A program made the translations under genes and the position numbers. Positions 1-60,263 of a stretch of DNA of 64,000 nt are shown here, piece after piece. Positions within the stretch are counted from its first letter, which is position 1. The number at the start of each line of letters is the position of its first letter. The notes beneath the pieces are model-generated. The model saw only the letters and a program-made list of their open reading frames with translations, made no database searches and was not told the origin of the DNA. This stretch comes from Paragordius varius (lineage: Eukaryota > Animalia > Nematomorpha): contig OZ176051.1 of NCBI GenBank assembly GCA_964247055.1, positions 1,364,001 to 1,428,000 of the forward strand, given 5' to 3'.

Positions 1-2354
1 AAAGAAATATTAATAAGGTTAAAGACTTTCCTAATATCTAGCTTTTGTTAAATAAAACTGGCGGAGTTCAAGATAATCGTTTATTTTACTTATGCTTCGT
101 TTACCCGATTAAAAAATATATTTTTAACCAATATTTGTAATATATTTGCCAAGTAACTTTTACTTACCGTATTCGATATCATTTTTAATTTCTAGTGGTG
201 TGTATTCAAATCTAGCACTTCCCATATTACACAAATTCCCATCTCGTAAACTGTGAGCATAGGAATCAATCATTTCTAAGCTAACATTTTTCGTAATATT
301 TGGATGTGAAATTAAACTTTGTGATTCATTTAGTTTTTCCTCGTTTGGCACGGATGATTGATATTCCGATTGAATATTTTTGCAGTTTAAATGACAGGCA
401 GGGGCGCCATACATGATGGTTTGATAGTCAAAAATCCAAGTAGAATTGCACATTCCTTTAACTTTACATCCATACTCCTGGCATTGGTAATTAGGATTGT
501 ATTCAGCTTAAATAGATTTAAATTGATTATGAAATAATTACAGTAAAAATTGGAATTATACGGATAAAATGCAAAAATATAAAGACTTTTTTTTTCAAAA
601 GACAACCATACTTTTTTAAACCTTAATTTATCCTATAAAAAACATTTAATTACAATCGTAAAATGCATAATTGATTGTGTCACCAATTTACATTTCTATA
701 ATATACTTTGCAGTTTAAAACGATGAGTTCTATTTAAAAAAATCAAGATTAAAAAGTATGGTTGTCTTTTACAAATAAGTTTTTGTTTAATTTTCACGTT
801 TTGTCCGTATAATTTCAATTTTTACTGTAAAGCTTTTGATATAAAAATGTTTTGCCAGAGTTCCAATAATAACACTTCTGAAAATTATAATAATGTTTTT
901 ATACAATTATATATAAGTTAAATTAAGCACCAAATAAGAAAAAATTTTAATATATTTCAATGCCATCAGATACAAATTTATCGTTGACCCTAATATTATT
1001 AATATTTTGAGAATTCAGGTTTTATTTCCTTCTTGCAAAGTTAGATGGCCATAATATACGACAATTCCCCTATTTAGACTCTAATCCGAACGAATATTCA
1101 TTCCTTTTAATATTATTAACTTATGGTGCAAAGCCCTTATACAAACAACATAAAGATATCTGTTTTTTTTTCAATAATATTTACATAAAAAAACTTAACT
1201 TTTACTAATTTTATGTTTGCATAATATTACCTTCATACTCATTTTCTTTCTTACAATCCCTTAAGTTGCACGTTTTATAGCGGGTTTTTCGACCAACACA
1301 AAAGGTCCCGTCGTTTGTCGGACTTTATTATTTATAAGATATTATAACTTCAAATATTATAAATTCTGATCAAAGAATAAAGGTTATATTAAAAAATTGA
1401 TTCTTTATTACACATTGGTTTTAGGATATTTTTAATCGAAATATTCCTTTGTACATTAGAGGCCCTTAATTTGGAAATTATTGTAAAATATAAAAATACC
1501 ATAATTTACAAAATATAAATGATAAATAAATTATCATCAAAACGATTTATCTTTATTTTCCTAAACCATAAATAAATTACATGGGATTATCACATGCCCG
1601 AGTTGATTTGGAAAGACCTATACCGCAAGATTTACTACACGGAGTCCAAGGGCCCCAATGTCCCCAATTTCCTATTTGCTGGAAAGTTTTATCATTAAGT
1701 TGTCTGACAGTCTGAGTTACTGCAATACATTCCTTATTGTAACACCATTTATTAACTCCACAATAGGTGCCATCCTCAACCATTTTCATTTTACTGATGC
1801 ATTTACCATTCACTTTACACCAGAGTGTACCACTACATATATCTTGTTTTTATCAATCAAAAGTGAGATTTGATATATATATATTGTAAAATTTTGAGAA
1901 AATTTACAGAACGGTATATTATTTTATGTTTTGTAAAATATTACTGATCAATTTTAACTCATAATCAAAATTATGAATTATATCGCACCGTAAAATTTTT
2001 TAGAATACTATAATATATTTGATATTAAATTTTAGTGTCTTAGAAATTTCATAATTATGTTAAAATTAAATCATGTACCAATAAAATATATATTATTGAG
2101 TGTATCTCTAAAATAAGAGTTATCTAAATAACAAAATTTAAATTAATAATATAATTAATCATCCAAATTTTGGGGTAGATTGCGATTCCAAAATATTTAA
2201 ACAAAATTTTATTAAGATTATAAATACAGCACAAAAAATTACCACTTTTTGGGACAAAAAAATCAATTACCACAATAATTATGACCTATAAATTAAATTA
2301 AATAAAAATTGAAATATGTAAGGCTTATATCTGTGGACGAACTTTGAATATTCA

Positions 2355-3412: not shown

Positions 3413-5713
3413 CTGTAAATTAAATTTTTATTTTTATGATGAAAATTTTACCATATACTTCTATACCGGGACAGTATGTGGTATTTCGCAGCCCCATGTT
3501 CAATTGGCATTGATGATCTAGGTTGTATCGTGTTCCCAAAAAATCAGTGGCTATTTTAGCATTCAAAACTGGATCGAAGGGTTTAAAGTGTAAAATCGTA
3601 AAGTTTCGATAGATATCTTGAAATATTGAGGGTGTATTTATGGAGTCTAGGGTTACATTTTTTATGATATGGTTTAATTTTTTTTCTTGTCCATCCACAG
3701 TTTTCAAATGTAGAATCAAATGTTGAGACAAATTTTTTTCATAAACCTCTGTGTCGATGACTGTCACGTATTGAGTAAATGGTTCAATGTATAAAAATAT
3801 TGATTCTTTTTCTATGATAGTTTTTGGTGGATGGGAGGAGGACATATTTTTGCTATTTGCCTTTAAACAATCTGCATTTTGTTTTTGAATGAAACCGGTT
3901 AACTCTTGGTAACTACAGTTGGACCATATAAGATCGGCCTCTAAACTTTGGGGTAACTGAGAATCCATAATGTATGGCATTTTTTTGGATTCATTATTTT
4001 GCTTTTTAATTCGATTAACATTGTGCCTTAAACAAAATTCCATTGTATCATGTTTCATACCTAATCTAACACCAACAATAACAATAGATGGCCAATAAAG
4101 TATATAACTTTTTCAAAAAAATTATTTAAATTAAGGCCCATTTGAATTTATTATTTTGGATGTGATATTTTGGATGTTATATTTTACAGTAAAACTTTTG
4201 TTGTAGATAAATTATTTTTTGTTATTGAGATTTAAAACCGCATATAATATCAATTTTGAAACTATGAAATAAATTATATGTTTATTAAAATAGTTTTTAT
4301 CATTCCTAAATACATTTATAGCAAAATAACATCTTAAAAGATCATCTCTTACTGGGATTTCTGAAGTAAAATACAGCATTTTTACCCTGTATATTTAAAG
4401 CTTTAAGTATTTTCTTAAGCATTTTAATAATTTTCTTTTGCTTAAAAATATTCTCCCATAATATTTTTTTCCTATCTCAAGTTTAAATAAAAGTAAAAAA
4501 AAGGAAATAATGTGTACAAATGTCCGATTTCATGTGCAATGGTGAATGCTGTGCTTAGTCCAGTATCTTCTGCAATGACACAACTCCTGCCATTCTGACA
4601 AATGGAACCGACTTCGGCCATCCCTAAAGTATTACAAGGCGTGTAATTCTGAGCGCATAAATCTAATCTGGTACAAATGAGTTATAAACGGACATTTTTT
4701 AAAATATATATATTTCAGTTTATTTACCTCATTTCTAAAAGTTATAATTGCAAAAAATAATTCTATGAAGGAAAATATACTTTGTTAGCATGATGGCCAC
4801 ATGATAAGATGGAACCAACTGACTTTCATTAAATAATGTGTATTGCCAAGCACAGAAGCTTTTTAGGTAATCATCAACATTGATTGTCATATTAACGGAT
4901 TTAGGCTTAATTATTTACAATTGTTGATTATAAAAAAATTTTAATAAAAAAATTAAAAAATTTAAAAATTACGATTGTCTTTAAATTTATCATAGAGTTC
5001 CATTCAATTGTAAGAGGGAATCCCAAACTTGAACGTTTGAATATGGAGGTAACCTAAATGTATAAATAAAGTTAAACTCATCTTATTTATTAACAAACCC
5101 AGATTGGTTAAGATAAGGTTGAAACATATAAAAATTTAAATTATACGGATTTTAAACATAAAGACAATACCGAATGCATCAAAGTATAAATATAAGCTTC
5201 AACATCATAGTTTATGTAATGCAAAACAAAAGATTGATCAGTAAAAACTATGGCTTTGATTATCATCGCCTCTAACATTGTGGATGTGATGTGGGACGCA
5301 GAATCTTCTGTAATAGAATTGGCGTAGATTATATAAAAACAATGCAAACTGAAAAGCAGAAAATGCATTTTTAAATACTTTTAACTTAACGTAAAAGATT
5401 TTTTTCTTACAATCGCACATCGCACCAAATGTTATTCAGAATATGCTGTATTAACTTAATATTTGCTTTAATTAATGAAAATATTCAATGGTTCATATTT
5501 CCATACTTATGCCTATGTGAATAGTACTTACTATATATGTATCTATATTTATACATTGTTGCAAAAGATAATTGTTTTTATCAAACATAATAACATTAAC
5601 TTGAGTGTGGGAAATGGAAATTAGTATGGTATGGTGAGATGTTGACTGTTTTATTGCAAACGCAAAACTCAGTTTGAGTAAATTTACACTTGTTTTGTCG
5701 CGTACAATTTGAG

Positions 5714-5978
5714 ATGGAAACAGGTAATAATGAAATGGGGAATGAACAAAAAGACCTCCGGTCTTACCTCCCCCATATAAGGAAGAAATTGAACGTCAAG
5801 CTCCAATGTTGGAAAACAATAATGGAGCCATTATATATCCAAATACTACCCAATTAATAACGCAAAATCAAACATCGGCTGCCTTTCCGAATGGTTATTT
5901 AAAATAAAATAATATTTTTTTGCAGGATACCATCATGGCATTCCTCAACCCGTTTTTTATCCGCCACATCCACCTGTG
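5714..5978 (+). pseudogene. PPxY membrane-protein gene copy A, exons 1-2 only, frameshifted
   Basis: Homologous to 48499-48767. It has a 1-nt deletion (AAAGACCTCC vs AAAGGTCCTCC), and exons 3-4 are not found downstream. Confidence 0.75.
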
Positions 5979-6645
5979 GTTAGTTATTTTTATTTTTGAA
6001 TAAAAATATATAAAATGTCTTTTTTATATGGTAAAATTGTCCACCAATGTTATAACGGTAAATCTACTAAACTAATTATTACAATTATTAATTAGTAATA
6101 TAATTATTTACATTTTATGCAAAATTTTGTACTTATATAACTTTAATAAACCGAAATATATAAAAATTTTTATTCAAAAACACTTGATATTACTTATTTC
6201 AAGCTAAAATCGAAAGGTAAAAATTTCGTCAACGATGTGTCAAATGGTAAAATTAAGAAAAAATACAAAGTAAACCCCCTTTCTATTTCTATCAATGTTA
6301 GATGTATTATATATCAAAAATTAGCTTTGGTTTTACCCTTAAAATTATATGAAGTCGATATTTTGCAAAAATTTTGTAAAATAAAAATAGCGTCGAAGTA
6401 GTTTGAGATGAAACTTTTTTTTCAAAACAAAATTTTATCAAGATATTTTGGCATATTTATATAATTTTTATCAGGATAGACGCATAAATTTAAATTGGGA
6501 CCGTTTCCTACAGTAGTTTTGTAAAAATATCTATTTAAATTTAGTCTGGGGTATTTAGATACCTCATTTGAATCGAAGTGTTAAAAAATTAAACGAAAAT
6601 AACATTTAAAGCAGTGGTTTATTTAGATAAAGCTTAGCGTGGGTT

Positions 6646-8340
6646 GGATGGATAATTTTAGGACTCCATAAGTTTTGTATCCACGAAGTAGCTTCCTCCA
6701 TAAATTACGATCTTTACATCGTTCTGTGGAAAGGCTACGTTGATTCAAGTCCATTTTTATATTATCATTATAAGAAAAGAGTGGTCGTCCCTTTCTTCTA
6801 TTGCCATCAACATTAATGTTTTCAACAGTTTTTAACGGATGGGTGGCGTCTCTTCTCTGAGTATGACCGTATAGACGCAATCTGTTTATTTGAATTATAT
6901 AATCGATTTTATCGGTTTTTTAATGAAAATTGGTAATTCTGGTGTACGAAAGCAGCTTTTGAGTATTCGTTCTCACTGGTTAGGAGTATTGTTTAATTTG
7001 TTCTGTTAATGCCCAGGTTTCAGAACCATAGGTAAGAGCAGGTCTTATTCCTACCTTGTAAAGATACCATTTATTACGATTGTTAATATTTTTGTTTTGG
7101 AAAACATATTTTAACTGATTATATTTTATCCAACCTTATTGTATTCTTCTTTTGATAGCCTTTTGTGGGCTTCCCTGAGATGATATGACATCTCCTTGGT
7201 ATACGAAAGCGTCAACCAATTCGATGTCATGTCCATCAATGTTAAGTAGCTTTGGTCGATTAAAATTATTATTGCCTGGGTCTAAGCAATTTAAACATTT
7301 AAAATTTATTACATTTGTTAACTTGTCTTTTATTTTAGAGCACTTTTTGTGTACCCACATTTGACATGATATGCATTTAATGGAATTCGATCGTACTTCT
7401 TTACTGCAAATGGAAAGGGGTATCTGGGTGTTTCACTTTCACCCGTTATCATTATTTTTGTTTTTGTGGCGTTTATAATCATTCCATATTGTTTAAGGCA
7501 TTTCTTCCACATGGTATATGTATTTACCATTTGATCCCATGATCGTGTCGTTATCACGAGGTCCTCGGCGAATAACATTTCCCAAGGGCATTCAGTTCTT
7601 ATGTCTTGCGTTGCCGCATCCATTATAGTTATAAAAAGGAGTGGACTTAGGACTGAACCCTGATGTAGTCCAGTATTAGTTGGGAAATTGCTTGTATTGC
7701 CGATATTGGTTCTAATGTTTGTTATTGTATTTTTGTAAAGAAATTGTAAGATTTGTATGGTGTGTTCCTCTATTTCGTTTTTACTTAGTGCCCATTGAAT
7801 TGTGGAGCGTGGTATTTGATCAAACGCACGTTCCAGATCTACAAAGACATGGTATAGCTTTTGTTTCTTTTCCAGATATTTTTCTTGTAAGCGTCTTAGG
7901 ATAAACAAGGGATCTATTGTGCTACTGTTTGGACGGAATGCAAACTGATTCGAATCTATGTTTAAATGTTTTCTCAGCCTGTTTTCTAATATATTTTCTA
8001 ATATTTTCAGTGTGTGTTCCAGAAGTTTTAAAGGTCGAGGCGATGTTTTTAGTCGATCGCCTTTATTTTTATAAATGGGGATTATTATGCTGTTCTTTTA
8101 ATCGCTGGGAGTTTGGTTTGTAATTATTATTTGGTTAAAGAGTATTGTCAGATACTCTGCACCTATTGACACCTCCCCGTGGTGTTGGCCGGGGCAGGAA
8201 AATGCGCTAACGGCAAAGGCCATTTTTCTAATGATCTGTAAAATCATTAGTTGTACACAAGGGCATGTGATACGTAAAAATTGCCTCAATAAACCATGAA
8301 GTATAATAATAATAATATGAATATGAAAGAACATTAAAAC
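6646..8340 (-). mobile_element. RTE-type non-LTR retrotransposon, 5'-truncated and degenerate, with an inverted 5' segment
   Basis: RT motifs FVDLERAFD, GLHQGSVLSPLLF and MLFAEDLV, plus a PHD-like WVHKKC segment. Flanked by the 13-bp TSD CTTAGCGTGGGTT (6633-6645 and 8341-8353). Short ATCC-repeat 3' tail. The empty site is seen at about 50760. Confidence 0.93.
8166..8216 (+). ncRNA. Truncated HDV-like self-cleaving ribozyme core inside the inverted 5' segment of the LINE
   Basis: ACC-TCCCCGT-GGT (P3/L3), GTTGGCC (P1 3' strand), GG (P1.1), GCA-GGAAAA-TGC (P4), GCTAA (J4/2), then GGCAA (P2 3' strand). The P1 5' strand is missing and P2 has a mismatch in this copy. Confidence 0.5.
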
Positions 8341-9961
8341 CTTAGCGTGGGTTATATATTAAAAATGATAAAAATGTTAACATAGAGTGAGTAACTAAAA
8401 AAATATTATAATATTCTGACAGAATTATATATCAGGAATATAACGGTGCTTTTGGTTTTGGAGCATGCGAGTGAAAGAAAGTTATCTACACTTTGGCAAA
8501 TGGTCCATATTAGAAAATGGCGAAATTCGCACTCATTTTTTTAATTAATTTTTTAGTGAGAGCTAAAAGCTTCATTCCAAAAAATATCACTAAAAGTTAT
8601 TATGAACTACATATAAAAAGCAAAAAAAATGAATTTTTTGATGTGGGCTATGAAAGTCGCAAATTTTCGCTCTTCTAAAATGGGCTACTTTTCTTAAAAT
8701 AAAATATCAACTAAATATTTTTATAGCATAGTTTTATCAAAAATTAATTTTTGGAAAACTTTGTTGAAGCATACCTTAATTATATTGAGGTATTATGGAA
8801 ACGGTATAAAAACGCTTTAAAACATTATAAAACACACTCTAAATTAGATAATGCTTAACATTTTTTCACCTAAGAATTTAGTACAAAGCGTTTGCTTAAG
8901 TGGTGAATTTTTGTAAAAAACACATATTTGCTTTATCTTAAAGACTTGGTTCCTGTGGTGTATGATTAACAATCATTTTTTATAAAACTAACATACTAAA
9001 ACTAAGTTTTGTTAGCGGCTCTGGTTTAACCGCGGTCATAAAAATTTAACAATCCATGTAAAACCATAAATTTTCTGGTTTTTATGGTGGAGCGAGCGCT
9101 TTTTTAAAATGGAATGTTTTCTAAAAAAATTTTCCGAAACTTTGATTAAAACAGACCCAAACCTAAATTATAATTTATCCAAATATTGACATCATAATTA
9201 AATATTTTTTTTATTCTTTTCATCTTTTAGATTAAATTTTAGATATATGGCTTTGTCATTTGATTCATGAGTCGAAGGCTATGAACAAATCACTTAGAAA
9301 TTTTATCGATAGAATAGGATGGCATAAAGAAATTTTTGATTATGGCAATGATTGTATTATAATTCAAAATATCAATAATCAATATATTAACTTGCGAAGG
9401 TGGCTAAAACGAATGTTTTTTTATAAATATTTTTAACAAAATCTAAACAGATTGATAAACTTTGATATTGCTAGATTAGTAAGTTTTTTTACCCATAATT
9501 AAGGAATATTTGACCTTCCAGATTTAAAAATATATCAACGGAATGGCGCATATATAAATGAAATGCAAGACTATAACTAAAACAAACCTATATGTTTTTT
9601 TGGTAAATTGTATAAAAATATTGTAAAAGCTTTTAGATAAATAAGACATAATGACGTTACTAGATGTATTAATTATTAAAACATTTATTTTTGACATGCA
9701 ACAATTAAAATACATATTATTTTTGGCCCCTTAGTTTTCGACATTTATACATCCGTGTATCTATGCATATTTTAATAATTTAATTCCCATGATATAACCC
9801 AAAAGACATCCATGAATTTGTATTAATATGATTAGAAACGAGAGTCGCCATAAATCACACTACGTAAATAATATATATGTTAGTTTTTAATTTTCGCTAT
9901 TAAATTTTTTAGGAAAATCAAATTGAAGATATTTATAAATTACGCCTAGATATTTATATAT

Positions 9962-10257
9962 ACCATTTACAATTCAAATTTACCCTTAAACAATTCAAAT
10001 TCACCCTTAAACAATTCAAATTCACCTCAAATAAATTACATGTTTTTTAAGATTAAAATTTACCTTATATTTTTATATTTGTTAAAAAAATAAAATTATG
10101 TTTTAAATTAAAATAATATTGAAATAAAAAACTATGCCACAAAGATATATTTCATATTAATAAATTATATTACTTTGAAAGCACATTTATTTTTAGGGTG
10201 AATTTGAATTGGAGGGTGAATTAAATTGTTCAAAGGTGAATTTGAACTGTAAATGGT
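9962..10257. mobile_element. TA-flanked MITE (family 1), site upstream of the orphan ORF
   Basis: TIRs ACCATTTACAATTCAAATT... / ...AATTTGAACTGTAAATGGT, subterminal CAATTCAAATTCACCC repeats mirrored at both ends, TA on both sides. Confidence 0.85.
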
Positions 10258-10320
10258 ATAATTTTAAAAATTTACTGTTAATATATAATTTTATAAGAAC
10301 GTATTTACTATTTTAGAATT

Positions 10321-10872
10321 ATGAGTTTTAACAATTTAACATTGGTCACGTTAACTTTACCGTATTGGTATGGGGTAGGGGAGGTGAAATATTGTTTTTA
10401 TGAAAAAAGACATTACAAATATTCACTTCAACAATATTATTCATGGCGCCCAGATACTTTGGAATGGGAAAGAATTGTTTTAACCGAAGATCAGCTGATG
10501 AAAAAAATTGAACCCTTTTATAGTCATTATATTTTACATATAAAATATTCAGAAATTAGAGAAATCATATACAGTAATAGGGATAAGGAACAAGATTATA
10601 CAAATGTTTATGGTAATGATAGGAATAAAGTTGCAAACATCATAAAAGAATATGTTGAAAAATACAAAGCCATGCAGAATAATGAATTGAAAACTGCTAT
10701 AAATTCATTGCCAATCAAATTATTTGAACAGTCTACGGATATAACCACAGAACTTACAAATGTAGATCTTATAGATGATTCGACTGAAATTTCTTCCAGA
10801 AAATTTAACAGTTGGTGGCTTTTTACAGAATGTTATTTCAATAATCCGTTGTATACCATGAATATGCATTAA
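10321..10872 (+). CDS. Orphan protein ORF (183 aa), single or terminal exon; function unknown
   Basis: Conserved in five cassettes; its indel relative to the 184-aa copies is 3 nt. A TTTTAG acceptor-like site lies 4 nt before the ATG. No recognisable motif. Confidence 0.75.
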   Translation: MSFNNLTLVTLTLPYWYGVGEVKYCFYEKRHYKYSLQQYYSWRPDTLEWERIVLTEDQLMKKIEPFYSHYILHIKYSEIREIIYSNRDKEQDYTNVYGNDRNKVANIIKEYVEKYKAMQNNELKTAINSLPIKLFEQSTDITTELTNVDLIDDSTEISSRKFNSWWLFTECYFNNPLYTMNMH

Positions 10873-13800
10873 GAAATATTTTGTAGATTTTTCAATAAAA
10901 CAATTACTAAACACAACATTTATTATTTACAAGGGCACGGTCTAAAAACCAAAGGTTTTTGTCTATATCGAGAACAGACGCTATCATCGATTAAATCTTT
11001 TAGCGACGGGTCTTTGACACAAAAAACTGACCGATACTGTAATGTTGGGCTGAAATATAGAGAGGATTCGTTTTTCGAATGGTATGAAGGAAAAGTTGTA
11101 TTAACGTCTTTTGTTGTTTCGCGGCAGAAACAAGGTTGCCAGTATCCTAACCACCAATAAGGGAGACAAGTAAAATTATTGCATTTTCGGGATAAAGTTG
11201 CTTTAGGTTTTGGTTGAGGACAAAGTTTATCGCTCACTTTGAGTCCAGATATAGAATTTGCACAAAAATAAGCCTTATTTTGTGTGCCACCCCATCTGTT
11301 GTTATTAGAATTTTCAAAACTACATTTTTTATTGCATGGACTCCAATCAGTTAATGCCCAGATGTATGATGTGTTGGTGGGATTATTGGAATCTAAACTT
11401 ATGTTTGACTTTACAGATTTGTGATAATAGGTGACAGATATATTGATTGAAACATTTAACTGAATAAAGAGAACATAAACGATCAGATCTTTTTCGAGTG
11501 GACCCACAATGGAAATAATTCTTGCTGACTTTTTTTGGTTGAAGTATAGTTATAAACTACGGCTTTTACAGCCGATGAACTTTTTACCCTATGCACCCCA
11601 AACCAGGTGATTGTTAAATTGCCATTAAGCATATATTCAGCATCCTGTGCATAAGTCAGAGCTAGATAATTAGCATTCTCACTCATTTCTTGAATGGTTA
11701 TTTGTGTTGCATCTTTTGGAATGGTTGCTACACTCAAATACGAGCTTGCATTGTTCTCCAAAAAACTATCTTCAACTTGACTCGTGTTAAGATAAACATA
11801 ATTTTCCACTTTTTTGCAATTTTTATTGCGTCCATCACAGATGAGACAATTATCTTTCTTAGCTCGGCTCTCTAGTCGTCGATCGCAAGCTATCGGATGA
11901 CAGCGCCCTTCTATACAAACACCATCTATATATATAAAACAAATGAATCATTTAGGATATAAAGAAATATTAATAAGCTTAAAGAGTTTCCTATTATCTA
12001 GCTTTTGCTAATTAAAACTGTCGGAGTTCAAGATAATCGTTTATTTTACTAATGCACCGTTTACCCGATTAAGAAAAATATTTTTCAATATTCTTTTAGT
12101 GATGTCAAAATAAATTTTATTTACTGTATTCGATATCACTTTTGATTTCTAGTGGCGTCTGTTCAAAACTAGCACTTCCCATATTACACAATGTCCCATC
12201 TCGTAAACTGTGAGCATATGAATCAATCATTTCTAAGCTAACATTTTTCGTAATATTTGGATGTGAAATTAAACTTTGCGATTCATTGAGTTTTTCCTCG
12301 TTTGGCACGGATGATTGATATTCCGATTGAATATTTTTGCAGTTTAAATGACAGGCAGGCGCGCCATACATGATGGTTTGATAGTCAAAAATCCAAGTAG
12401 AATTGCATATTCCTTTAACTTTATATCCATACTCCTGGCATTGGTAATTAGGATTGTATTCTGCTTAAATATATTGTAATTGAATATGAATTATTTACAG
12501 TAAAAATGGAAATTATACGGACAAAATGTAAAAATATAAAGAAAATTTTTTTTTTCAAAACACAACCATACTTTTTTAAACCTTAATTCATCCTATAAAA
12601 ACATTTAATTACAATCGTAAAATAAATAAAATTGATTGTGTTACCAATTTACATTTTTATATTATACTTTGTAGTTTAAAACATAGAATTCTATTTAAAA
12701 AAAATCAAGATTAAAAAAGGATGGTTGTCTTTTAGTAAAAAATATTTGTTTTATTTTCACGTTTTACCGTATAATTTCAATTTTTACTGTGAAGCTGTTG
12801 TATAAAAAAGTTTTGCCAGATTTCCAAAATAATAACAATTTTGAAAATTACATATGTCTTTATACTATATATAAGTTGAATTAAGACTCAAAAAGAAAAA
12901 TATAGATTTAATATATTTCAATGCCATCAGATACATATTTATCGTTGACTCTAAAAATAATATTATCAATATTTTGAGAATTTAGGTTATTCCCTTCTTG
13001 CAAAGTGCTTAGATGCGACTTAATATCCGACAAATCCCCTATTTAGAATCTAATCTGAACGAAAATTTACTTTATTATTAACGTATGGTGCAAAGCTACT
13101 CTACAAACGACATAAAGATATCTGTTTTTTAAAATAATATTTAGATAAAAAACTTAACTTTTACTAGTTATTATGTTTTCATAATATTACCTTCATACTC
13201 ATTTTCTTTCTTACAATCCCTTAAGTTGCATGTTTTATAGCGGGTTTTTCGACCAACACAAAAGGTCCCATCGTTTGTCGGGCTTTATTAATTTAAAAGA
13301 CATTATAACTTCAAAAATTATAAATTCTGATCATAGAAAAAAGGGTATATTAGAAAAATTGATTCTTTATTACACATTGGTTATAAGATATTTTTAATCG
13401 AAATATTCCTTTGTACATTAGAGGCCCTTAATTTGGAAATTATTGTAAAATATAAAATACCATATTAATCAAATTAGAACTTATAAATGAAAAATAAATT
13501 ATCATCAAAACAATTTATCTTAATTTTCCTAAACCATAAATAAATTACATTGGATTATCACATGCTCGAGTTGATTTGGAAAGACCTATGCCACAAGATT
13601 TACTACATGGAGTCCAAGGGCCCCAATGTCCCCAATTTCCTATTTGCTGGAAAGTTTTATCATTAAGTTGTCTGACATTCTGAGTTACTGCAATACATTC
13701 CTTGTTGTAACACCATTTATTAACTCCACAATAGGTGCCATCCTCAACCATTTTCATTTTACTGATGCATTTACCATTCACTTTACAACAGAGTGTTCCA

Positions 13801-15280: not shown

Positions 15281-17651
15281 CAAATTTATATTTTTAGTAC
15301 GAAAATATTAATATATACTTCTATACCGGGACAGTATGTGGTATTTCGCAGGCCCATGTTCAATTGGCATTGGTGATCTAGGTTGTATTGTGTTCCCAAA
15401 AAATTGGTGGCTATTTTGGCTTGCAAATCTGGATCGTACGGTTTAAAGTGTAAAATGGTAAAATTTCGATAAACATCTTGAAATATTGAAGGTTTATCTA
15501 TGGAGTCTAGGGTTATATTTTTTATGATATGACTTAAATTTTTTTCTTGTTTCTGCACAGTTTTCAAATGTTGAATCAAATGTTGGGACAAATTCTTTTC
15601 ATAAGCCTCTGTGTCGATGACAGTCACGTATTGAGTAAAGGGTTCAAAGTATAAAAACATTGATTCTTTTTCTATGATAGTTTTTGGTGGATGGGAGGAG
15701 GACATATTGTCGCTTTTTGCCTTTAAACAATCTGCATTTTGTTTTTGAATGAAACCATTTAACTCTTGATAACTACAGTTGGACCATATAAGATCGGCCT
15801 CTAAACTTTGAGGTAACTGAGAGTCCATAATGTATGGCAGTTTTTTGGATTCATTATTTTGCTTTTTTTTTAATTCGATTATTAACATTGTGCCTTAAAC
15901 AAAATTCCATTGTATCATGTTTCATACCTAATCTAACAACGGCAACAATAATAGATGGGCAATATATAAATTTACTCAAAAAAATATTTTAATTAAGGCC
16001 CATTTGAATTTATTATTTTGGATGTCATATTTTACAGTAAAACTTTTGTTTTAAATAAATTATTTTTTGTTATTAAGATTTAAAACCGCATATAATATTA
16101 ATTTTAAACCCATGAAATAAATCATATGTTTAGGAACACAAAAAAAACTTTATTTATATTCAAAAAATGGTTTTTACCATTCCTAAATACATTTATAACA
16201 AAATTACATCTTAGAAAGGTCATTTCTTACTATTTTAGACATGGATTCCCAGAGCGCTTACACACCTTTATATCCTGGATATGAAGTAAAATACAGCATT
16301 TTTACCCTTTATATTTAAAGTATTAGGTATATTCTTAAGCATCTTATTAATTATCTTTTGCTCAAAAATATTCCCCCCCAAATTATTTTTTTCCTATCTC
16401 AAGTTTAAATAAAAGTAAAAAAAGGAAATAATGTGTACAAATGTCCGATTTCATGTGCAATGGTGAATGCTGTGCTTAGTCCAGTATCTTCAGCAATGAC
16501 ACAACTTCTACCATTCTGACATATGGAACCGACTTCGGCCATTCCTAAAGTATTACAAGGCGTGTAATTCTGAGCGCATAAATCTAATCTAGTGCAAATG
16601 ATTTATAAACGAACATTTTATAAAATATAATTGTTCAGTTTATTTACCTCATTTCTAAATGTTAAAATTGCAAAAAATAATTCTATGAAGGAAAAAATAC
16701 TTTGTTAACATGATGGCCACGTGATAGGATGGTACCAACTGACTTTCATTGAATAATGTGTATTGCCAAGCACAGAAGCTTTTTAAGTAATCATCAGCAT
16801 TTATTGTCATATTAACCGATTTAGGCTTAATTATATACAATTGTTATAAAACAATTTGAATAAAAAAATTAAAAAATTTAAAAATTACGATTGTCTTTAA
16901 ATGTATCATAGAGTTCCATTCAATTGTAAGAGGGAATCCGAAACTGGATCGTTTAAATATGGAGTTAACCTTAATGTATAAATAATGTTCATTTAATAAA
17001 ATATTAATGGGAATAAAAAAAGTTAACCAAAACCAGAATGGATTTAGGAAGGTTGGAATTGTTTATATAATTTAAAAACTAAAAATTTACCGGAGTATAT
17101 GTAGATATTAACTCACCGAATGCATTAAAGTATATATGTAAGCTTCAACATCATAGTTTTTGTAATGCGAAACAAAAGATTGATCAGTAAAAACTATGGC
17201 TTTGATTATCATCGCCTCTAACAATGTGGATGTGATGTGGGACGCAGAATCTTCTGTAATAGAATTAGCATAGATTATATAAAAACAATGCAAACTCAAA
17301 AGCAGAAAATGCATTATTAAATACTTTTAACTTAACGTAAAAGATATTTTTTTCTTACAATCGCATCGCACCAAATGTTATTCAGAATATGCTGCATAAC
17401 TTAATGCTTGCTTAAATTAATGAAAATATTCAATGGCTCATATTTCCCTATTTATGCCTATATGAAAAGTACTTACTATATTTGTATCTCCAATGATATA
17501 AAAGTTAATTGTTTACATCAAACACAATAATAACATTAATTTGAGTGTGGGAAATGGAAGTTAGTATGGTATGGTGAGATGTTGACTGTTTTATTGCAAA
17601 CGCAAAACTCAGTTTGAGTAAATTTACACTTGTTTTGTCGTACAATTTGAG

Positions 17652-24800: not shown

Positions 24801-27652
24801 CCGAGTTGATTTGGAAAGACCTATACCGCAAGATTTACTACAAGCTGTCCAAGGGCCCCAATGTCCCCAATTTCCTATTTGCTGGAAAGTTTTATCATTA
24901 AGTTGTCTGACACTCTGAGTTATTGCAATACATTCCTTGTTGTAACACCATTTATTAACTCCACAATAGGTGCCATCTTCAACCATTTTCATTTTACTGA
25001 TGCATTTACCATTCACTTTACACCAGAGTGTACCACTGCATATATCCTGTTTTAGTTAACAATCAAAAGTGAGAAATTTTGATAAAATTTACAAATAATT
25101 GAACCGTAATATTTCATTTTATTTTATCTTTTGTAAAATATTAGTAGTCATTTTTAACTCACAATCAAAATTATGAATAAAATCAGACCGTAAAATATTT
25201 TTAGAATACTATAATATATTTGATATAAAATTTTAGTGTCTTTAGAAAATTTAATTTTGTAATCTAGTTATATATTTAGAAATATTTCATAATTGTGTTA
25301 AAATTAAATTGTGTACAATTAAAATATATATTATGGAGTTTTCTAAAATAAGAGTAACCTAAATAACAAAATTTAAATTAATAATATAATTAACCATCCA
25401 ATTTTAGGGTATATTGCGATTCCATAATATTTAAACAAAATTTATATATGATATAAATATAAACAAAAAATAAATTACCACATTTTGGGACAAAAAAATC
25501 AAATATCATAATAATTATGACCTATAAAAATAATAAAATAAAAATTGAAATATGTAAGGCTTATATCTGTGGAAGAACTTTGAATTACATATAATTATAA
25601 ATCAATTTGTATTTTTATTATGAAAATAGTAATATATACTTCTATACCGGGACAGTATGTGGTATTTCGCAGCCCCATGTTCAATTGGCATTGGTGATCT
25701 AGGTTGTATTGTGTTCCCAAAAAATCGGTGGCTATTTTGGCATTCAAAACTGGATCGTACGGTTTAAAGTGTAAAATAGTAAAGTTCCGATAGATGCCTT
25801 GAAATACTGAGGGTGTATCTATGGAGTCTAGGGTTACATTTTTTATGATATGACTTAAATTTTTTTCCTGTTTCTCCACAGTTTTCAAATGTTAAATTAA
25901 ATGTTGGGACAAATTCTTTTCATAAGCCTCTGTGTCGATGACTGTCACGTATTGAGTAAATGGTTCAATATATAAAAACATTAATTCCTTTTCTATAATA
26001 GTTTTTGGTGGATGGTTGGAGGACATATTGTCGCCGTTTGCTTTTAAACAATCTGCATTTTGTTTTTGAATGAAACCGGTTAACTCTTGATAACTACAGT
26101 TGGACCATATAAGATCGGCCTCTAAACTTTGCGGTAACTGAGAATCCATAATGTATGGCAGTTTTTTGGATTCATTATTTTGCTTTTTTTGAATTCGATT
26201 AACATTGTGCTTTAAACAAAATTCCATTGTATCATGTTTCATACCTAATCTAACACCAACAATAACAATAGATGGCCAATATAAAATTCAAAAAAATAAT
26301 TTCAATTAAGGCCCATTTGAATTTATTATTTTGGTGTCATATTTTACAGTAAAACTTTTGTTTTAGATAAATTATTTTTTGTTATCAAGTATTAAAACCG
26401 CATGTAATATCAATTTGAAACTATTAAATAAATCAAGTGTGTTTAGAAACTTGAAAAACTTTATTTATATTCAAAAAATGTTTTTTACCATTCCTAAATA
26501 CATTTATAGCAAAATTACATCTTAGAAAGGCCATTTCTTATTATTTTAGACTGGGATTCCCAGACACCCTTAAATCCTGGGTATGAAGTAAAATACAGTA
26601 TTTTTACCCTTTAATATAAAGTATTAGGTATTTTCTTAAGCATCTTAAAAATTTTCTTTTGCTCAAAAATATTCTCCCAAAATATTTATTTCCTATCTCA
26701 AGTTTAAATAAAAGTAAAAAAAGGAAATAATGTACAAATGTCCGATTTCATGTGCAATAGTGAATGCTGTGCTTAGTCCAGTATCTTCTGCAATGACACA
26801 ACTTCTACCATTCTGACAAATGGAACCGACTTCGGCCATCCCTAAAGTATTACAAGGCGTGTAATTCTGAGCGCATAAATCTAATCTAGTACAAATGATT
26901 ATAACATCTTTAAGAATGCGAAATCAACTTTTTATTTATTAAACGAACATTTTTAAAAATATAATTGTTCAGTTTATTTACCGCATTTCTAAAAGTTATA
27001 ATTGCAAAAAATAATTCTATGAAGGAAAAAAAAACTTTGTTAGCATGATGGCCACGTGATAAGATGGAACCAACTGACTTTCATTGAATAATGTATATTG
27101 CCAAGCACAGAAGCTTTTTAAGTAATCATCAGCATTGATTGTCATATTAACGGATTTAGGCTTATTTATATACAATTGATGATTATAAAACAATTGCAAT
27201 AAAAAATTAAAAAATTTAAAAATTACGATTGTCTTCAAATGTATCATAGAGTTCCATTCTATGGTAAGAGGAAATCCGAAACTTGAACGTTTAAATATGG
27301 AGTTAACCTTTATATATAATTTATGTTCATTTCATAAAAATATTAATGAGAAGAAAAAAGCTAATCAAAATTTGATTGGATTTAGGAAGGTTGGAATTAT
27401 TTATATAATTTAAAAACTAAAAATTTACCGGAGTATATGTAGATATTGACTTACCGAATGCATCAAAGTATATATGTAAGCTTCAACATCATAGTTTTTG
27501 TAATGCAAAACAAAAGATTGATCAGTAAAAACTATGGCTTTAATTATCATCGCCTCTAACAATGTGGATCTGATGTGGGACGCAGAATCTTCTGTAATAG
27601 AATTAGCGTAGATTATATAAAAACAATGCAAACTCAAAATCGGAAAATGCAT
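21896..27652 (-). pseudogene. ADAMTS-type metalloprotease copy C, nonsense mutation plus lost acceptor
   Basis: CAA>TAA at 25889-25891 in exon 5, and a deletion of about 17 nt near 23430 that removes the exon 8 acceptor (TAAG|CAGAA). Confidence 0.85.
24231..24550. mobile_element. TA-flanked MITE (family 1) in ADAMTS-C intron 6
   Basis: ACCATTTACAG...AAATGGT TIRs; absent from intron 6 of copies A and B. Confidence 0.85.
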
Positions 27653-34100: not shown

Positions 34101-36832
34101 TACTACAAGCTGTCCAAGGGCCCCAATGTCCCCAATTTCCTATTTGCTGGAAAGTTTTATCATTAAGGCGTCTGAGATTCTGAGTTATTGCAATACATTC
34201 CTTGTTGAAACACCATTTATTAACTCCACAATAGGTCCCATCTTCAACCATTTTCATTTTACTGATGCATTTACCATTCACTTTACACCAGAGTGTACCA
34301 CTGCATATATCCTGTTTTTGTTATAAATCAAAAGTGAGAAATTTTGAGAAAATTTATAAATAATTAAACGGTAATATTTCATATTATTTTATGTTTTGTT
34401 AAATATTTAGTCATTTTTAACGACGAATCAAAATTATGAATTATATCACACCGTAATTTTTTAGAATACTATAATATATTTTATATAAAATATAAGGGTT
34501 TTTAGTATTCTAATTTTGTATATAATCTAGTTATATATTTATTTATGATTGTGTTAAAATTAAATTGTGTACAATTAAAATATATATTATTGAGTATATC
34601 TCTAAAATAAGAGTTATCTAAATAACAAAGTTTAAATTAATAATTTAATTAACCATCCGAATTCTGGGGTAGATTGCGATTCCAAAATCGTTAAACAAAA
34701 TTTTATTAAGAATATAAATATAGCACAAAAAATCAATTACCACTTTTTGGGACAAAAAAATTTCATAATAATTATGACCTATAAACAAAATTAAATAAAA
34801 ATTATATGTGAGGCTTATATCTGTGGACGATTCAAATAAATATAAATCAAATTTTTATTTTTATTGCGAAAATTTTAACATATACTTCTATACCGGGACA
34901 GTAAGTGGTATTTCGCAGCCCCATGTTTAATTGGCATTGGTGATCTAGGTTGTATTGTGTTCCCAAAAAATCGGTGGCTATTTTAGCATTCAAAACTGAA
35001 TCGTACGGTTTAAAGTGTAAAATGGTAAAGTTTCGATAAATATCTTGAAATATTGAGGGTGTATTTATGGAGTCTAGGGTTACATTTTTTATGATATGAC
35101 TTAAATTTTTTTCTTGTTTCTCCACAGTTTTCAAATGTTGAATTAAATGTTGGGACAAATTCTTTTCATAAGCCTCTGTGTCGATGACTGTCACGTATTG
35201 AGTAAATGGTTCAAAGTATAATAACATTGATACTTTTTCTATGATAGCTTTTGGTTGATGGGTGGACATATTGTCGCCGTTTGTCTTTAAACAATCTGCA
35301 TTTTGTTTTTGAATGAAACCGGTTAACTCTTGGTAACTACAGTTGGACCATATAAGATCGGCCTCTAAACTTTGCGGTAACTGAGAATCCATAATGTATG
35401 GCATTTTTTTGGATTCATTATTTTGCTTTTTTTGACTTCGATTAACATTATGCCTTAAACAAAATTCCATTGTATCATGTTTCATACCTAATCTAACAAC
35501 GGCAACAATAATAGATGGGCAAATAAAGTATAATAACTTTTTCAAAAAATTTAATTTCAGTTAAGACCGATAAATGCAAAAACGTTAATTTTGAATTTAT
35601 TATTTTGGATGTCATATTTTACAGTAAAACTTTTGTTTTAAATAAATTGAAACCAAAATTACTTTATTTATATTCGATAATTGGTTTTTACCATTCCTAA
35701 ATACATTTATAGCAAAATTACATCTTAGAAAAGTCATTTTTTACTATTTTAGACATAAATTCCCAGAGCGCTTACACACCTTTAAATCGTGGTTATAAAG
35801 TAAAATACAGCATTTTTGCCCTTTATATTTAAAGTATTTGGTATTTTCTTAAGCATATTATTAATTATCATTTGCTCAAAAATATTCCCCCAAAATATTT
35901 TTTTTCTATCTCAAGTTTAAATAAAAGTAAAAAAAGGAAATAATGTGTACAAATGTCCGATTTCATGAGCAATGGTAAATGCTGTGCTTAGTCCAGTATC
36001 TTCTGCAATGACACAACTTCTGCTATTCTGACAAATGGAACCGACTTCGGCCATTCCCAAAGTATTACAAGGCGTGTAATTCTGAGCGCATAAATCTAAT
36101 CTAGTACAAATGATTTATTAAACGAACATTTTTTAAAATATAATTGTTCAGTTTATTTACCTCATTTCTAAAAGGTATAATTGCAAAAAATATTTCATGA
36201 AGGAAAAAAAACTTTGTTAGCATGATGGCCACATGATAAGATGCAACCAACTGACTCTCATTAAATAATGTGTATTGCCAAGCACAGAAGCTTTTTAAGT
36301 AATCATCAGCATTGATTGTCATATTAACGGATTTAGGCTTATTTATATACAATTGTTGATTATAAAATAATTTTATTAATAAAAAAATTAAAAAATTTAA
36401 AAATTACGATTGTCTTCAAATGTATCATATAGTTCCATTCTATGGTAAGAGGGAATCCCAAACTTGAACGTTTAAATATGGAGTTAACCTTAATATATAA
36501 ATATGGAGTTAACCTAAAAATATTAATGAGAATAAAAAAACTAATCAAAATTTGAATGGATTTAGGAAAGTTGGAATTGTTTATGTAGTTTAAAAACTAA
36601 AAATTTACCGGAGTATATATAGATACTAACTCACCGAATGCATCAAAGTATATATGTAAGCTTCAACATCATAGTTTTTGTAATGCAAAACAAAAGATTG
36701 ATCAGTAAAAACTATGGCTTTAATTATCATCGCCTCTAACATTGTGGATGTGATGTGGGACGCTGAATCTTCTGTAAAAGAATTAGCGTAGATTATATAA
36801 AAACAATGCAAACTAAAAAGCAGAAAATGCAT
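31151..36832 (-). CDS. ADAMTS-type secreted metalloprotease copy D, apparently intact, 9 exons, 952 aa, no prodomain
   Basis: Exons are 36635-36832, 36408-36488, 36213-36337, 35951-36100, 34886-35492, 34049-34311, 33428-33519, 32350-32688 and 31151-32154. All introns are GT-AG with consistent phase, summing to 2859 nt. Zinc motif AHEIGHLLGMKHD is split across exons 4/5. Met-turn YIMD, disintegrin-like, TSP1, Cys-rich, spacer and two C-terminal TSP1 repeats follow. Confidence 0.92.
33563..33821. mobile_element. TA-flanked MITE (family 1) in ADAMTS-D intron 6
   Basis: Same TIRs and site as 24231-24550. Confidence 0.85.
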
Positions 36833-45500: not shown

Positions 45501-48162
45501 GTTGTCTTAGAGTCTGAGTTACTGCAATACATTCCTTATTGTAACACCATTTATTAACTCCACAATAGGTCCCATCCTCAACCATTTTCATTTTACTGAT
45601 GCATTTACCATTCACTTTACACCAGAGTGTACCACTGCATATATCCTGTTCTCGTTATCAATCAAAAGTGAGAAATTTTGAGCAAATTTACAAATAATAT
45701 AACCGTAATATTTCATTTTATTTTATCTTTTGTAAAATATTAATCAAAATTATGAAGCAAATCACACCGTAAAATCTTTTAAAATACTATGATATATTTT
45801 ATATATAATTTTAGTGTCTTAGAAATTTCATAATTGTGTTAAATTTAAAATATTGTACAAATAAATATATATTATTGAGTGTATCTCTAAAATAAAAGTT
45901 AATTAAATAACAAAATTCAAATTAATAATATAATTAACCATCCAAATTTTGGGGGTAGATTGCGATTCCAAAATATTTAAACAAAATTTTATTTAGAATT
46001 TTGATATAAACAGAAAATAAATTACCACCTTTTGGGACAAAAAAATCAATTATAATAATAATTATGACCTTAAAATTTGAAATATGTAAGGATTATATCT
46101 GTGGACGAACTTTGAATATTTATATATGTATATATAAATCAAATTTATATTTTTAGTACGAAAATATTAATATTACTTCTATACCGGGACAGTAAGTGGT
46201 ATTTCGTAGGCCCATGTTTAATTGGCATTGGTGATCTAAGTTGTATTGAGTTCCCAAAAAATCGGTGGCTATTTTGGCATTCAAAACTGGATCGAAGGGT
46301 TTAAAGTGTAAAATGGTAAAATTTCGATAAACATCCAGAAATATTGAAGGTGTATCTATAGAGTCTATGGTTAAATTTTTTATGATATGACTTAAATTTT
46401 TTTCTTGTCCATCCACAGTTTTCAAATGTTGAATTAAGTGTTGGGACAAATTCTTTTCATAAGCCTCTGTGTCGGTGACTGTCACATATTCAGTAAAGGG
46501 TTCAATATATAATAACATTGACTCCTTTTCTATGATAGTTTTTTGTGGATGGGTGGAGGACATATTTTCGCTATTTGCCTTTAAACAATCTGCATTTTGT
46601 TTTTGAATGAAACCGGTTAACTCTTGATAACTACAATTGGACCATATAAGATCGGCCTCTAAACTTTGGGGTAACTGAGAATCCATAATGTATGGCATTT
46701 TTTTGGATTCATTATTTTGCTTTTTTTGACTTCGATTAACATTGTGCCTTAAACAAAATTCCATTGTATCATGTTTCATACCTAATCTAACACCAACAGA
46801 AACAACAATAGATGGCCAATAAAGTATATAACTTTTTCAAAAAAAATATTTTAATTAAGGCCCATTTGAATTTATTATTTTGGATGTCATATTTTACAGT
46901 AAAACTTTTGTTGTAGATAAATTATTTTTTGTTATAAAGTATTAAAACCGCATGTATTATCAATTTTGAAACCATGAAATTCAGATATGTTTAGAAACAT
47001 GAAAAAAACTTTATTAATGTTAATAAAATGGTTTTTTACTATACATGCATATAAAAAGTTATATCTTAGGATCATCTTGTATTTTAGCTAGGATTCCCAA
47101 ACCGCTAACACACCTTTAAATGCTGATTATAAAGTAAAATACAGCATTTTTGCCCTTTATATTTTAAGTATTTGGTATTTTCTTAAGAAACTTATTTAAT
47201 TTTCTTTTGCTCAAAAATATTCCCCCAAAATAGTTTTTTCCTATCTCAAGTTTTAATGAAGTAATTTACAAATGTCCAAATTCATGTGCAATGGTGAATG
47301 CTGTGCTTAGTCCAGTATCTTCTGCAATGACACAACTTCTGCCATTCTGACAAATGGAACCGACTTCGGCCATTCCTAAAGTATTACAAGGCGTGTAATT
47401 CTGAGCGCATAAATCTAATCTAGTACAAATTATGCAACATCCTTAAGAATGTGAAATCAACTTTTTATTTAATAAGCAAACACTTTTTAAATATAATTGT
47501 TCAGTTTATTTACCTCATTTCTAAAACTTGTAATTGCAAAAAATAATTCTATGAAGGAAAAAATACTTTGTTATCATGATGGCCACGTGATAAGATGGAA
47601 CCAAGTGACTTTTATTGAATAATGTGTATTGCCAAGCACAGAAGCTTTTTAAGTAATCATCAGCATTGATTGTCATATTAACGGATTTAGGCTTAATGTT
47701 ATAAAATTGATGATTATAAAAAAAATATTAAAAAAATTTAAAAATTACGATTGTCTTCAAATGTATCATAGAGTTCCATTCTATGGTAAGAGGGAATCCA
47801 AAACTTGAACGTTTAAATATGGAGTTAACCTTAATGTATAAATTATGTTAACCTAATCGTATTTAAAATTAACGAAAATCCCAGATTGGTTAAGATAAGG
47901 TTGAAATATATATATAAAATTTGAATTATACGGATTTTAAAAACATAAAGATAATTTAACTTACCGAATGCATCAAAGTATATATGTAAGCTTCAATATC
48001 ATAATTTTTGTAATGCAAAACAAAAGATTGATCAGTAAAAACTATGGCTTTGATTATCATCGCCTCTAACATTGTGGATGTGATGTGGGACGCTGAATCT
48101 TCTGTAATAGAATTAGCGTAGATTATATAAAAACAATGCAAACTCAAAAGCAGAAAATGCAT
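42547..48162 (-). CDS. ADAMTS-type secreted metalloprotease copy E, apparently intact
   Basis: All 9 exons have GT-AG sites and open frames; the zinc motif here is HEFGHLLGMKHD. Confidence 0.88.
44929..45141. mobile_element. MITE family 1 in ADAMTS-E intron 6, left end truncated
   Basis: Subterminal repeats and right TIR are present at the same site as in C, D and F; the left start is approximate. Confidence 0.7.
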
Positions 48163-58900: not shown

Positions 58901-60263
58901 ATTTCAGTTAAGACCGATAAATGCAAATAAGTTAATTTTGAATTTATTATTTTGGATGTCATATTTTACAGTAAAACTTTTGTTTTAGATTTTATGTTAT
59001 AAAGAATTAAATCAGCATTTAATATTGTAACAAATAAATCCTATGTTTAGAAATACAAAAAATACTTTATTAATGTTAATAAAATGTTTTTTACTATACA
59101 TTTATATTAAAAAGTTATATCTTAGAAAGATCATCTTTTACTATTTTAGACATGGATTCCCAGAGCGCTTACACACCTTTAAATCTGGTTATGAAATAAA
59201 ATACAACATTTTTGTCCTTTATATTTAAAGTATTTGGTATTTTCTTAAGCATCTTATTAACTTTCATTTGCTCAAAAATATTCCCCCAAATTATTTTTTT
59301 TCTATCTCAAGTTTTAATGAAGTACAAAAGGGAAATAATGTACAAATGTCCGATTTCATGAGCAATGGTGAATGCTGTGCTTAGTCCAGTATCTTCTGCA
59401 ATGACACAACTTCTGCCATTTTGACATATGGAACCGACTTCGGCCATCCCTAAAGTATTACAAGGCGTGTAATTCTGAGCGCATAAATCTAATCTAGTAC
59501 AAATGATTTAACATCTTTGAGAATGTGAAATCAACTTTTTATTTATTAAACGAACTTATTTTAAAATATTATATTTCAGTTTATTTATTCTATTTCTAAA
59601 AGTTTTAATTGCAAAAAATAATTGTATGAAGGAAAAAATACTTTGTTAGCATGATGGCCACGTGATAAGATGGAACCAACTGACTTTCATTGAATAATGT
59701 ATATTGCCAAGCACAGAAGCTTTTTAGGTAATCATCAGCATTGATTGTCATATTAACGGATTTAGGCTTAATGTTATAAAATTGTTGATTATAAAATAAT
59801 TTTAATTAAAAAAAAATTAAAAAATTTAAAAATTACGATTGTTTTCAAATGTATCATAGAGTTCCATTCTATGGTAAGAGGGAAACCGAAACTTGAACGT
59901 TTAAATATGGAGTTAACCTTAATGTATAAATAATGTTCATTTCATAAAAATATTAATGGGAATAAAAAAAGTTAACCAAAATATGAATGGATTTAGGAAG
60001 GTTGGAATTGTTTTTAAAATTTAAAAACTAAAAATTTACTTGAGTATATGTAGATATTAACTCACCGAATGCATCAAAGTATATATGTAAGCTTCAACAT
60101 CATAGTTTTTGTAATGCAAAACAAAAGATTGATCAGTAAAAACTATGGCTTTGATTATCATCGCCTCTAACATTGTGGATGTGATGTGGGACGCAGAATC
60201 TTCTGTAATAGAATTAGCGTAGATTATATAAAAACAATGCAAACTTAAAATCAGAAAATGCAT
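52949..60263 (-). CDS. ADAMTS-type secreted metalloprotease copy F, apparently intact; intron 5 carries two Helitrons
   Basis: All 9 exons have GT-AG sites and open frames; HEIGHLLGMKHD. Confidence 0.88.
55363..55628. mobile_element. TA-flanked MITE (family 1) in ADAMTS-F intron 6
   Basis: Same TIRs and site as in C and D. Confidence 0.85.
56384..56969 (+). mobile_element. Non-autonomous Helitron, insertion unique to copy F
   Basis: A|TCTATATA...CTAG|T. The flanks rejoin to TTGTAATCT(G/A)GTTATAT, as in the empty sites near 14010 and 25260. Confidence 0.92.
57202..58184 (+). mobile_element. Non-autonomous Helitron, same insertion as 14256-15237
   Basis: Identical site, the same unusual G before the 5' TC, and the same internal variant. 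Confidence 0.9.

Follow-up and report, generated by a model that had tools for sequence, protein, structure and literature searches.

How can a protease of the ADAMTS family do without the prodomain that its relatives carry? ADAMTS proteases normally have a propeptide of about 200 amino acids that is removed by furin, and this prodomain is generally held to be necessary for folding, secretion or latency. The question is raised by a stretch of 64,000 nucleotides from the hairworm Paragordius varius (Nematomorpha; assembly GCA_964247055.1 of 110.5 Mb, contig OZ176051.1, here C2; C2:1,364,001-1,428,000), which is AT-rich (~28% GC) and which we call the window. On its minus strand lie six tandem copies of an ADAMTS gene in which a hydrophobic leader is joined almost directly to the catalytic domain, and a preliminary description of this DNA had proposed that the gene lacks a prodomain. 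Our results support that proposal by an in-frame stop just upstream of the start codon, by closed frames further upstream, by negative profile searches and by the same build in a second hairworm genus, Gordionus (protein XP_065312848, P0121 in our set). We conclude, with a probability of roughly 70%, that a hairworm-specific subfamily of true ADAMTS has lost its prodomain.

A leader exon joined to a complete catalytic domain

Translation of exon 1 of the first copy on the minus strand gives a hydrophobic leader of 18 residues and a linker of 17 residues, none of them basic, after which strand 1 and helix A of the reprolysin fold begin, the exon ending in YIYTLMHS. The same succession of leader, short linker and catalytic start had been described for all six copies, and translation bears this out, exon 1 of the window copies (further start codons at 17314, 27652, 36832, 48162 and 60263) showing 91-97% amino acid identity. 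The assignment to strand 1 and helix A was confirmed by alignment to canonical ADAMTS and by an AlphaFold model of the Gordionus relative, and, as had been stated, no furin-type RxxR site occurs in exon 1 of any copy. The exon itself is real; its boundary had to be moved, since 5168-5170 are the first three bases of the intron on the minus strand, with the GT donor at 5170-5169, and the coding part is 5171-5368. Its frame contains no stop codon in any of the 12 copies of the array described below, and the ratio of the proportions of non-synonymous and synonymous differences (pN/pS) is 0.36.

The initial methionine is followed by an uncharged stretch of 19 residues, and ANS|I satisfies the -3/-1 rule, a heuristic by which cleavage after ANS is predicted. 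Exons 1-5 join in frame with coherent splice sites, and the junction of exons 4 and 5 yields HEIGHLLGMKHD. Across this junction the zinc site HExxHxxGxxHD reads HEIGHL|LGMKHD, the Met-turn YIMD lies downstream of it, and zinc site, Met-turn and the eight cysteines of the catalytic domain are all intact. The last exon of this copy, interrupted by a premature stop, lies beyond the left edge of the window.

Searched exon by exon, the gene proves to be a true ADAMTS (MEROPS M12B), because its downstream exons carry the Pfam domains Reprolysin_3, ADAMTS_CR_2, TSP_1, ADAMTS_spacer1 and TSP1_ADAMTS. Exon 6 scores 33.3 bits for ADAMTS_CR_2 and 28.4 bits for TSP_1, ADAMTS_spacer1 is found at 46-67 bits in 12 of 12 copies, and the cysteine-rich exon aligns with residues 553-630 of the Gordionus protein, in which ADAMTS_CR_3 is weak (19.6 bits, under the cut-off). 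Exons 1-3, searched separately, gave no Pfam match, the pieces being too short. An ADAMTS-like protein (ADAMTSL or papilin) is ruled out, since the catalytic domain is present and its zinc site is intact. What is missing is the prodomain (Pep_M12B_propep) with its proprotein-convertase site, and it is here that the subfamily departs from ADAMTS.

Search for a hidden prodomain

The search for Pep_M12B_propep that the preliminary description had proposed was run over the whole genome in six frames (PF01562). The sole match was a control gene at C3:4.93 Mb, and none was obtained in the window. A custom hidden Markov model (HMM), trained on the N-terminal regions of 114 canonical ADAMTS homologues, recovered the same control gene (E 2e-6); its best match in the 64-kb window had an E of 4.4 and lay in a dispersed repeat, and it had no match in 31 kb around the Gordionus gene.

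Since the sensitivity of the prodomain HMM is limited, a homology-free count of stop codons was added. Over the 12 copies, every one of the six frames between 5380 and 5660 contains 47-129 stops, and comparison of the 12 copies revealed no conserved minus-strand coding block from exon 1 to the 3' end of the next copy, which at 10926-11809 (minus strand) is the far limit of the space upstream. The conservation peaks at 5670-5970 and 10230-10860 are plus-strand exons of a divergent partner gene. Those at 8880-8970 and 9330-9540 were ruled out as hidden exons, as they contain indels of 1 or 2 nucleotides between copies and stops in every frame. We also ruled out that the prodomain has moved into an insert in exon 5, where both the prodomain HMM and Pfam were negative. 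That the divergent gene begins about 340 bp upstream proved correct, conserved plus-strand coding being found from ~346 bp with an ATG at 5714; the argument drawn from this distance, that no room is left for prodomain exons, is weak when taken alone. The absence of the prodomain rests on the lack of any upstream coding signal, and not on the closeness of the partner gene.

The alignment also places the missing cleavage site. In 119 canonical homologues, fetched from the best-hit ADAMTS clades only, R-x-K/R-R precedes the catalytic domain, whose first residue has a median position of 250. In the window gene DSASHITST occupies the position of this motif and strand 1 aligns with the canonical VETLVVAD; the Gordionus protein described below is likewise non-basic at the place of the motif. 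Exon 1 has no arginine in five of the six window copies and a single one in the copy starting at 27652.

Other M12B genes of the same genome keep their prodomains, namely the control gene at C3:4.93 Mb, an ADAMTS at C4:8.04 Mb and an ADAM10/17-like gene at C4:4.13 Mb, and the loss is therefore specific to the subfamily of the array. The canonical ADAMTS at C4:8,043,000-8,051,400, our internal control, encodes a signal peptide and, after it, a long and divergent prodomain (KCIYDGYF..., GMFEMNGQQYFIEPM); its furin site, RSKR, is followed by SVSREHFVEVMIVAD and shares an exon with the first catalytic strand. The ADAM10/17-like gene is a single-exon open reading frame (ORF) of 657 amino acids (C4:4,127,756-4,129,726, minus strand) with leader, prodomain, HELGHALGSFHD and disintegrin domain.

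A search of exon 5 against 1.84 billion representative proteins returned a single match, the protein of Gordionus sp. m RMFG-2023 (also CAK9293471; annotated as 'ADAMTS12-like', longer isoform of 924 amino acids). This protein has a hydrophobic leader of 17 amino acids on an exon of its own, about 15 further residues, and then EIRTLIVADP of the catalytic domain. Its leader exon has its own ATG, an upstream in-frame stop and a GT-AG intron, and no prodomain signal was found in the 10 kb upstream of the gene. By Pfam it contains every ADAMTS domain except Pep_M12B_propep (Reprolysin, 50.9 bits). Its residue 41 aligns with residue 6 of the furin-processed chain in the ADAMTS-5 crystal structure, and in the AlphaFold model the catalytic domain begins at strand 1, followed by helix A, with a predicted local distance difference test score (pLDDT) of ~90; against the structures of ADAMTS-5, -1 and -4 the target-normalised template modelling scores are 0.78-0.87. 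The zinc-site exon (exon 4) of the window gene is 82-85% identical to that of Gordionus, and exon 2 has the length of the corresponding Gordionus exon.

The two hairworm genes thus share the prodomain-less build, the insert in exon 5 and the position of the intron after exon 1. They differ in that the Gordionus leader lies on a separate exon 1.6 kb upstream, that no partner gene adjoins it and that it is apparently single-copy, with one annotated gene, two isoforms and no further paralogue found. The Gordionus model was made independently of the present reading, at a locus of 26.7% GC in a genome of 26.9% GC. The loss of the prodomain is older than the split from Gordionus. A word search for transcript-derived relatives, with residues 1-260 of the Gordionus protein as query, retrieved nothing but an unrelated exon of a GON-type ADAMTS from a metagenome, and in the literature we found no publication on the missing prodomain of this protein, no paper linking ADAMTS with horsehair worms and none on an ADAMTS without a prodomain.

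The tandem array and other explanations of its build

The array consists of 12 units of ~11 kb (C2:1,302,743-1,424,263, 122 kb), six in the window and six just to its left on the same contig. The six window units are 84-95% identical at the DNA level, and identity between copies is 92-98% in the coding blocks but ~91% over the whole unit. Exon 1 was found in 12 of 12 copies, with ATG in 11 and ATA in one. Over the tested coding blocks, which amount to ~2.8 kb per copy, five of the 12 are intact (C2:1327532, C2:1358332 and the window copies starting at 36832, 48162 and 60263). Among these five the ratio of non-synonymous to synonymous substitution rates (dN/dS) is 0.23 overall, at a dS of ~0.15; exon 1 has a value of 0.25 and the zinc-site exon one of 0.06. 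In the first copy of the window the lesion is a stop at codon 215 of the last exon, which would drop the C-terminal TSP1 repeats; the lesions of the second and third copies are given in the table, and four more lesion-bearing copies lie outside the window. The identities between copies, their lesions and the dN/dS values indicate recent amplification and birth-and-death evolution under purifying selection. Two copies have peculiarities of their own. The fifth window copy has, within 47269-47433 (minus strand), HEFGH for HEIGH, by which a valid HExxH is retained, and the copy at C2:1318020, which combines the ATA start with a stop in the last exon, is likely a pseudogene.

Several points weigh against a loss of the prodomain. 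No sequencing run recorded as RNA was found to cover the locus, and the four best runs (over 4451-10450) look like genomic DNA, introns and spacers being evenly covered and exon-exon joints absent. The prodomain HMM detects divergent hairworm prodomains poorly, as the C4 ADAMTS, which clearly has one, reached an E of only 0.04. Codons 6-7 of exon 1 contain in all copies an AG, preceded by a T-rich run, which could conceivably be an acceptor for exons further upstream. The signal peptide was assessed by hydrophobicity and the -3/-1 rule alone, and the Gordionus model is a BRAKER/TSEBRA prediction with RNA sequencing and protein hints rather than a cloned complementary DNA. Of the 12 copies, seven are damaged by a stop, a frameshift or the loss of the start codon, and three of these seven belong to the six in the window. 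Finally, ADAMTS9 and ADAMTS17 fail to be secreted when their propeptides are missing (PMC8275829), so that folding in the absence of one cannot be taken for granted.

The first three of these points would agree with a gene model that is incomplete at its 5' end, in which prodomain exons in or beyond the partner gene are spliced into or before exon 1 and the 'leader' is internal. We consider this unlikely. The AG of codons 6-7 is accounted for by the Ser codon AGT, and ATG and hydrophobic leader are found together in 11 of 12 copies, with a pN/pS below 0.5. No upstream minus-strand frame is open in any copy, the conserved peaks being either on the plus strand or interrupted by frameshifting indels. 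Gordionus has its own start codon and leader exon, with a stop upstream and no prodomain signal, and the canonical ADAMTS of the Paragordius genome has its furin site in the strand-1 exon, at a position that is non-basic here.

The damaged copies and the lack of an RNA run covering the locus would also fit an array of decaying, non-expressed duplicated DNA, whose prodomain-less build has no function today. This is improbable as well, given that five copies have stayed intact over ~2.8 kb in a genome of 28% GC, where random frames close fast. The dN/dS values, including the 0.06 of the zinc-site exon, speak against it, as do the better conservation of exons than of introns and spacers and the intact single-copy relative in Gordionus.

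A further alternative accepts that the prodomain is absent and assigns latency or help in folding to something else: to the insert, to the partner protein, or to stand-alone prodomain proteins acting in trans. The insert (~110 amino acids, 3600-3870 on the minus strand, in exon 5) separates the catalytic from the disintegrin-like domain; in ADAMTS-5 a linker of 12 residues takes this place. It is homologous between both hairworms, measuring 150 amino acids in Gordionus (P0121 ~261-408), and is constrained (pN/pS 0.40). The partner gene is duplicated with the protease in every unit, across a spacer of ~350 bp; it encodes a PPPY motif near the N-terminus, and its last exon is intact in seven of 12 copies (pN/pS 0.46). 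These facts, together with the requirement of some ADAMTS for their propeptide in secretion (PMC8275829), are what such an explanation could build on. Against it, the insert has no similarity to prodomains and no recognisable family, a feature search of the Atlas was empty for it, and its fold prediction is uninformative (pLDDT ~30 in the Gordionus model, 35 for window exon 5 alone). The partner has no Pfam family above the cut-off, no homologue in the databases and no counterpart beside the Gordionus gene, and the candidates are tied to the protease by co-occurrence alone. We give this explanation little credence.

Two repeats lie within the stretch of the partner gene. An RTE-type retroelement without long terminal repeats (~6119-8866, also 38000-41898) lies in the partner intron of some units only, with a reverse-transcriptase ORF at 7333-8097 (minus strand) and a read depth tens of thousands of times that of its flanks. 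Just upstream of the last exon of the partner, 9850-10250 is a short-period repeat (FKFTLKQ-type units), probably dispersed or satellite DNA, in which each of the four runs shows extreme depth and joints within the block are numerous.

Table. Coordinates in the window of the first ADAMTS copy, its surroundings and exon 1 of the other copies
Feature	Position	Strand	Remarks
Exon 1, first copy	5171..5368	-	ATG, leader, linker, strand 1 and start of helix A
In-frame TAA stop	5381..5383	-	15 nt 5' of the ATG; stop-to-stop frame starts at 5380
Non-coding spacer, ADAMTS start to divergent partner gene	5380..5660	.	Stops in all six frames
Exon 2	4973..5053	-	27 amino acids; rest of helix A and strand 2
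Exon 3	4781..4905	-	Splice sites read off the sequence
Exon 4	4518..4667	-	Start of zinc site, HEIGHL; Reprolysin_3, 26.8 bits
Exon 5	3459..4065	-	Completes HEIGHLLGMKHD; Met-turn (YIMD), WSNCS, ~110-aa insert, start of disintegrin-like domain
Exon 6	1583..1846	-	Remaining disintegrin-like domain (ADAMTS_CR_2) and central TSP1
Exons 7 and 8	163..1324	-	End of TSP1 and Cys-rich region; in ORF pieces 1214-1324 and 163-507
Divergent co-amplified orphan partner gene	5714..10872	+	Coding blocks ~5749-5981 and 10321-10869; not part of the protease
3' end of second copy	10926..11809	-	Spacer and C-terminal TSP1; ADAMTS_spacer1 46 bits, TSP1_ADAMTS
Exon 1, second copy	17117..17314	-	1-nt frameshifts in exon 5 and last exon
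Exon 1, third copy	27455..27652	-	Stop within the exon-5 insert
Exon 1, fourth copy	36635..36832	-	Intact in every tested block
Exon 1, fifth copy	47965..48162	-	Intact; zinc motif HEFGH
Exon 1, sixth copy	60066..60263	-	Intact

A proposed protease without a zymogen stage and its known relatives

The gene specifies, from the N-terminus on, a predicted signal peptide of 18 residues, a linker of ~17 residues without furin site or cysteine switch and a complete reprolysin catalytic domain, which is followed by the lineage-specific insert of ~110 amino acids, the disintegrin-like domain, the central TSP1, the Cys-rich region, the spacer and C-terminal TSP1 repeats. With a signal peptide and a short linker in this order, cleavage by signal peptidase alone would release the enzyme, its N-terminus lying ~8 residues before the canonical furin cut point. 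The enzyme may be secreted, fold without a chaperone prodomain and be catalytically active, possibly constitutively so and without activation by furin. If it is indeed produced without a zymogen stage, its activity would have to be controlled by the time and place of expression, by access to substrate or by inhibitors. In this species the gene and its divergent orphan partner have been amplified recently to the 12 tandem copies seen today.

What could such an enzyme be used for? Hairworms are parasites that develop inside arthropods, and to our knowledge the molecular parasitology of this phylum is almost unknown. Its recent 12-fold amplification makes the family a candidate for a factor in host interaction, and a role between parasite and host may be suspected. 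A natural lineage of prodomain-free ADAMTS that is conserved in two hairworm genera and subject to purifying selection would make it possible to test what the catalytic domain requires for folding, and a prodomain-less ADAMTS could be a compact and easily expressed enzyme. Less probable than any of the explanations weighed above is that hairworms have split the ADAMTS zymogen into separate genes, the prodomain-less protease being folded or checked in trans by stand-alone prodomain proteins or by the orphan partner and then deployed in the parasitic stage against host matrix or haemolymph proteins; if true, no natural system with protease and prodomain on two genes would have been known before in the M12B family.

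Some database ADAMTS models (P0021, P0108 and P0047) resemble the hairworm proteins in that their catalytic domain also starts within the first 100 residues. They were ruled out as precedents, as they have no hydrophobic leader and keep the furin site (in one example RHKR stands before S); these short-N-terminus ADAMTS are truncated gene models or isoforms and do not represent secreted enzymes without a prodomain.

The best sequence matches of the hairworm proteins are in the canonical 7/12, 6/10 and 16/18 groups, which have the same ancillary architecture, zinc site and cysteine pattern, with 30-34% identity over the shared part. In contrast, the members of these groups carry a prodomain of ~200-250 residues ending in R-x-K/R-R, and none has the insert of 110-150 amino acids. 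The Gordionus protein scores 163 bits against ADAMTS-5 and 159 against ADAMTS-1 (145-163 over ADAMTS-4, -1 and -5). It scores only 75 bits against ADAMTS13 and has no CUB domain by Pfam, and orthology to ADAMTS13 is thereby ruled out. Yet it is ADAMTS13 that offers the closest comparison in function, as the only known exception among ADAMTS (PMC8275829). Its very short propeptide is reported to be dispensable as a chaperone and for latency, and its pro-form to be active (Majerus et al. 2003, summarised in PMC8275829 and PMC10499240). ADAMTS13 retains a short propeptide with a furin site, has CUB domains and lacks an insert after the catalytic domain, whereas the hairworm proteins have neither propeptide nor furin site. 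It is nevertheless a functional precedent, in which an ADAMTS catalytic domain folds and acts without a long prodomain.

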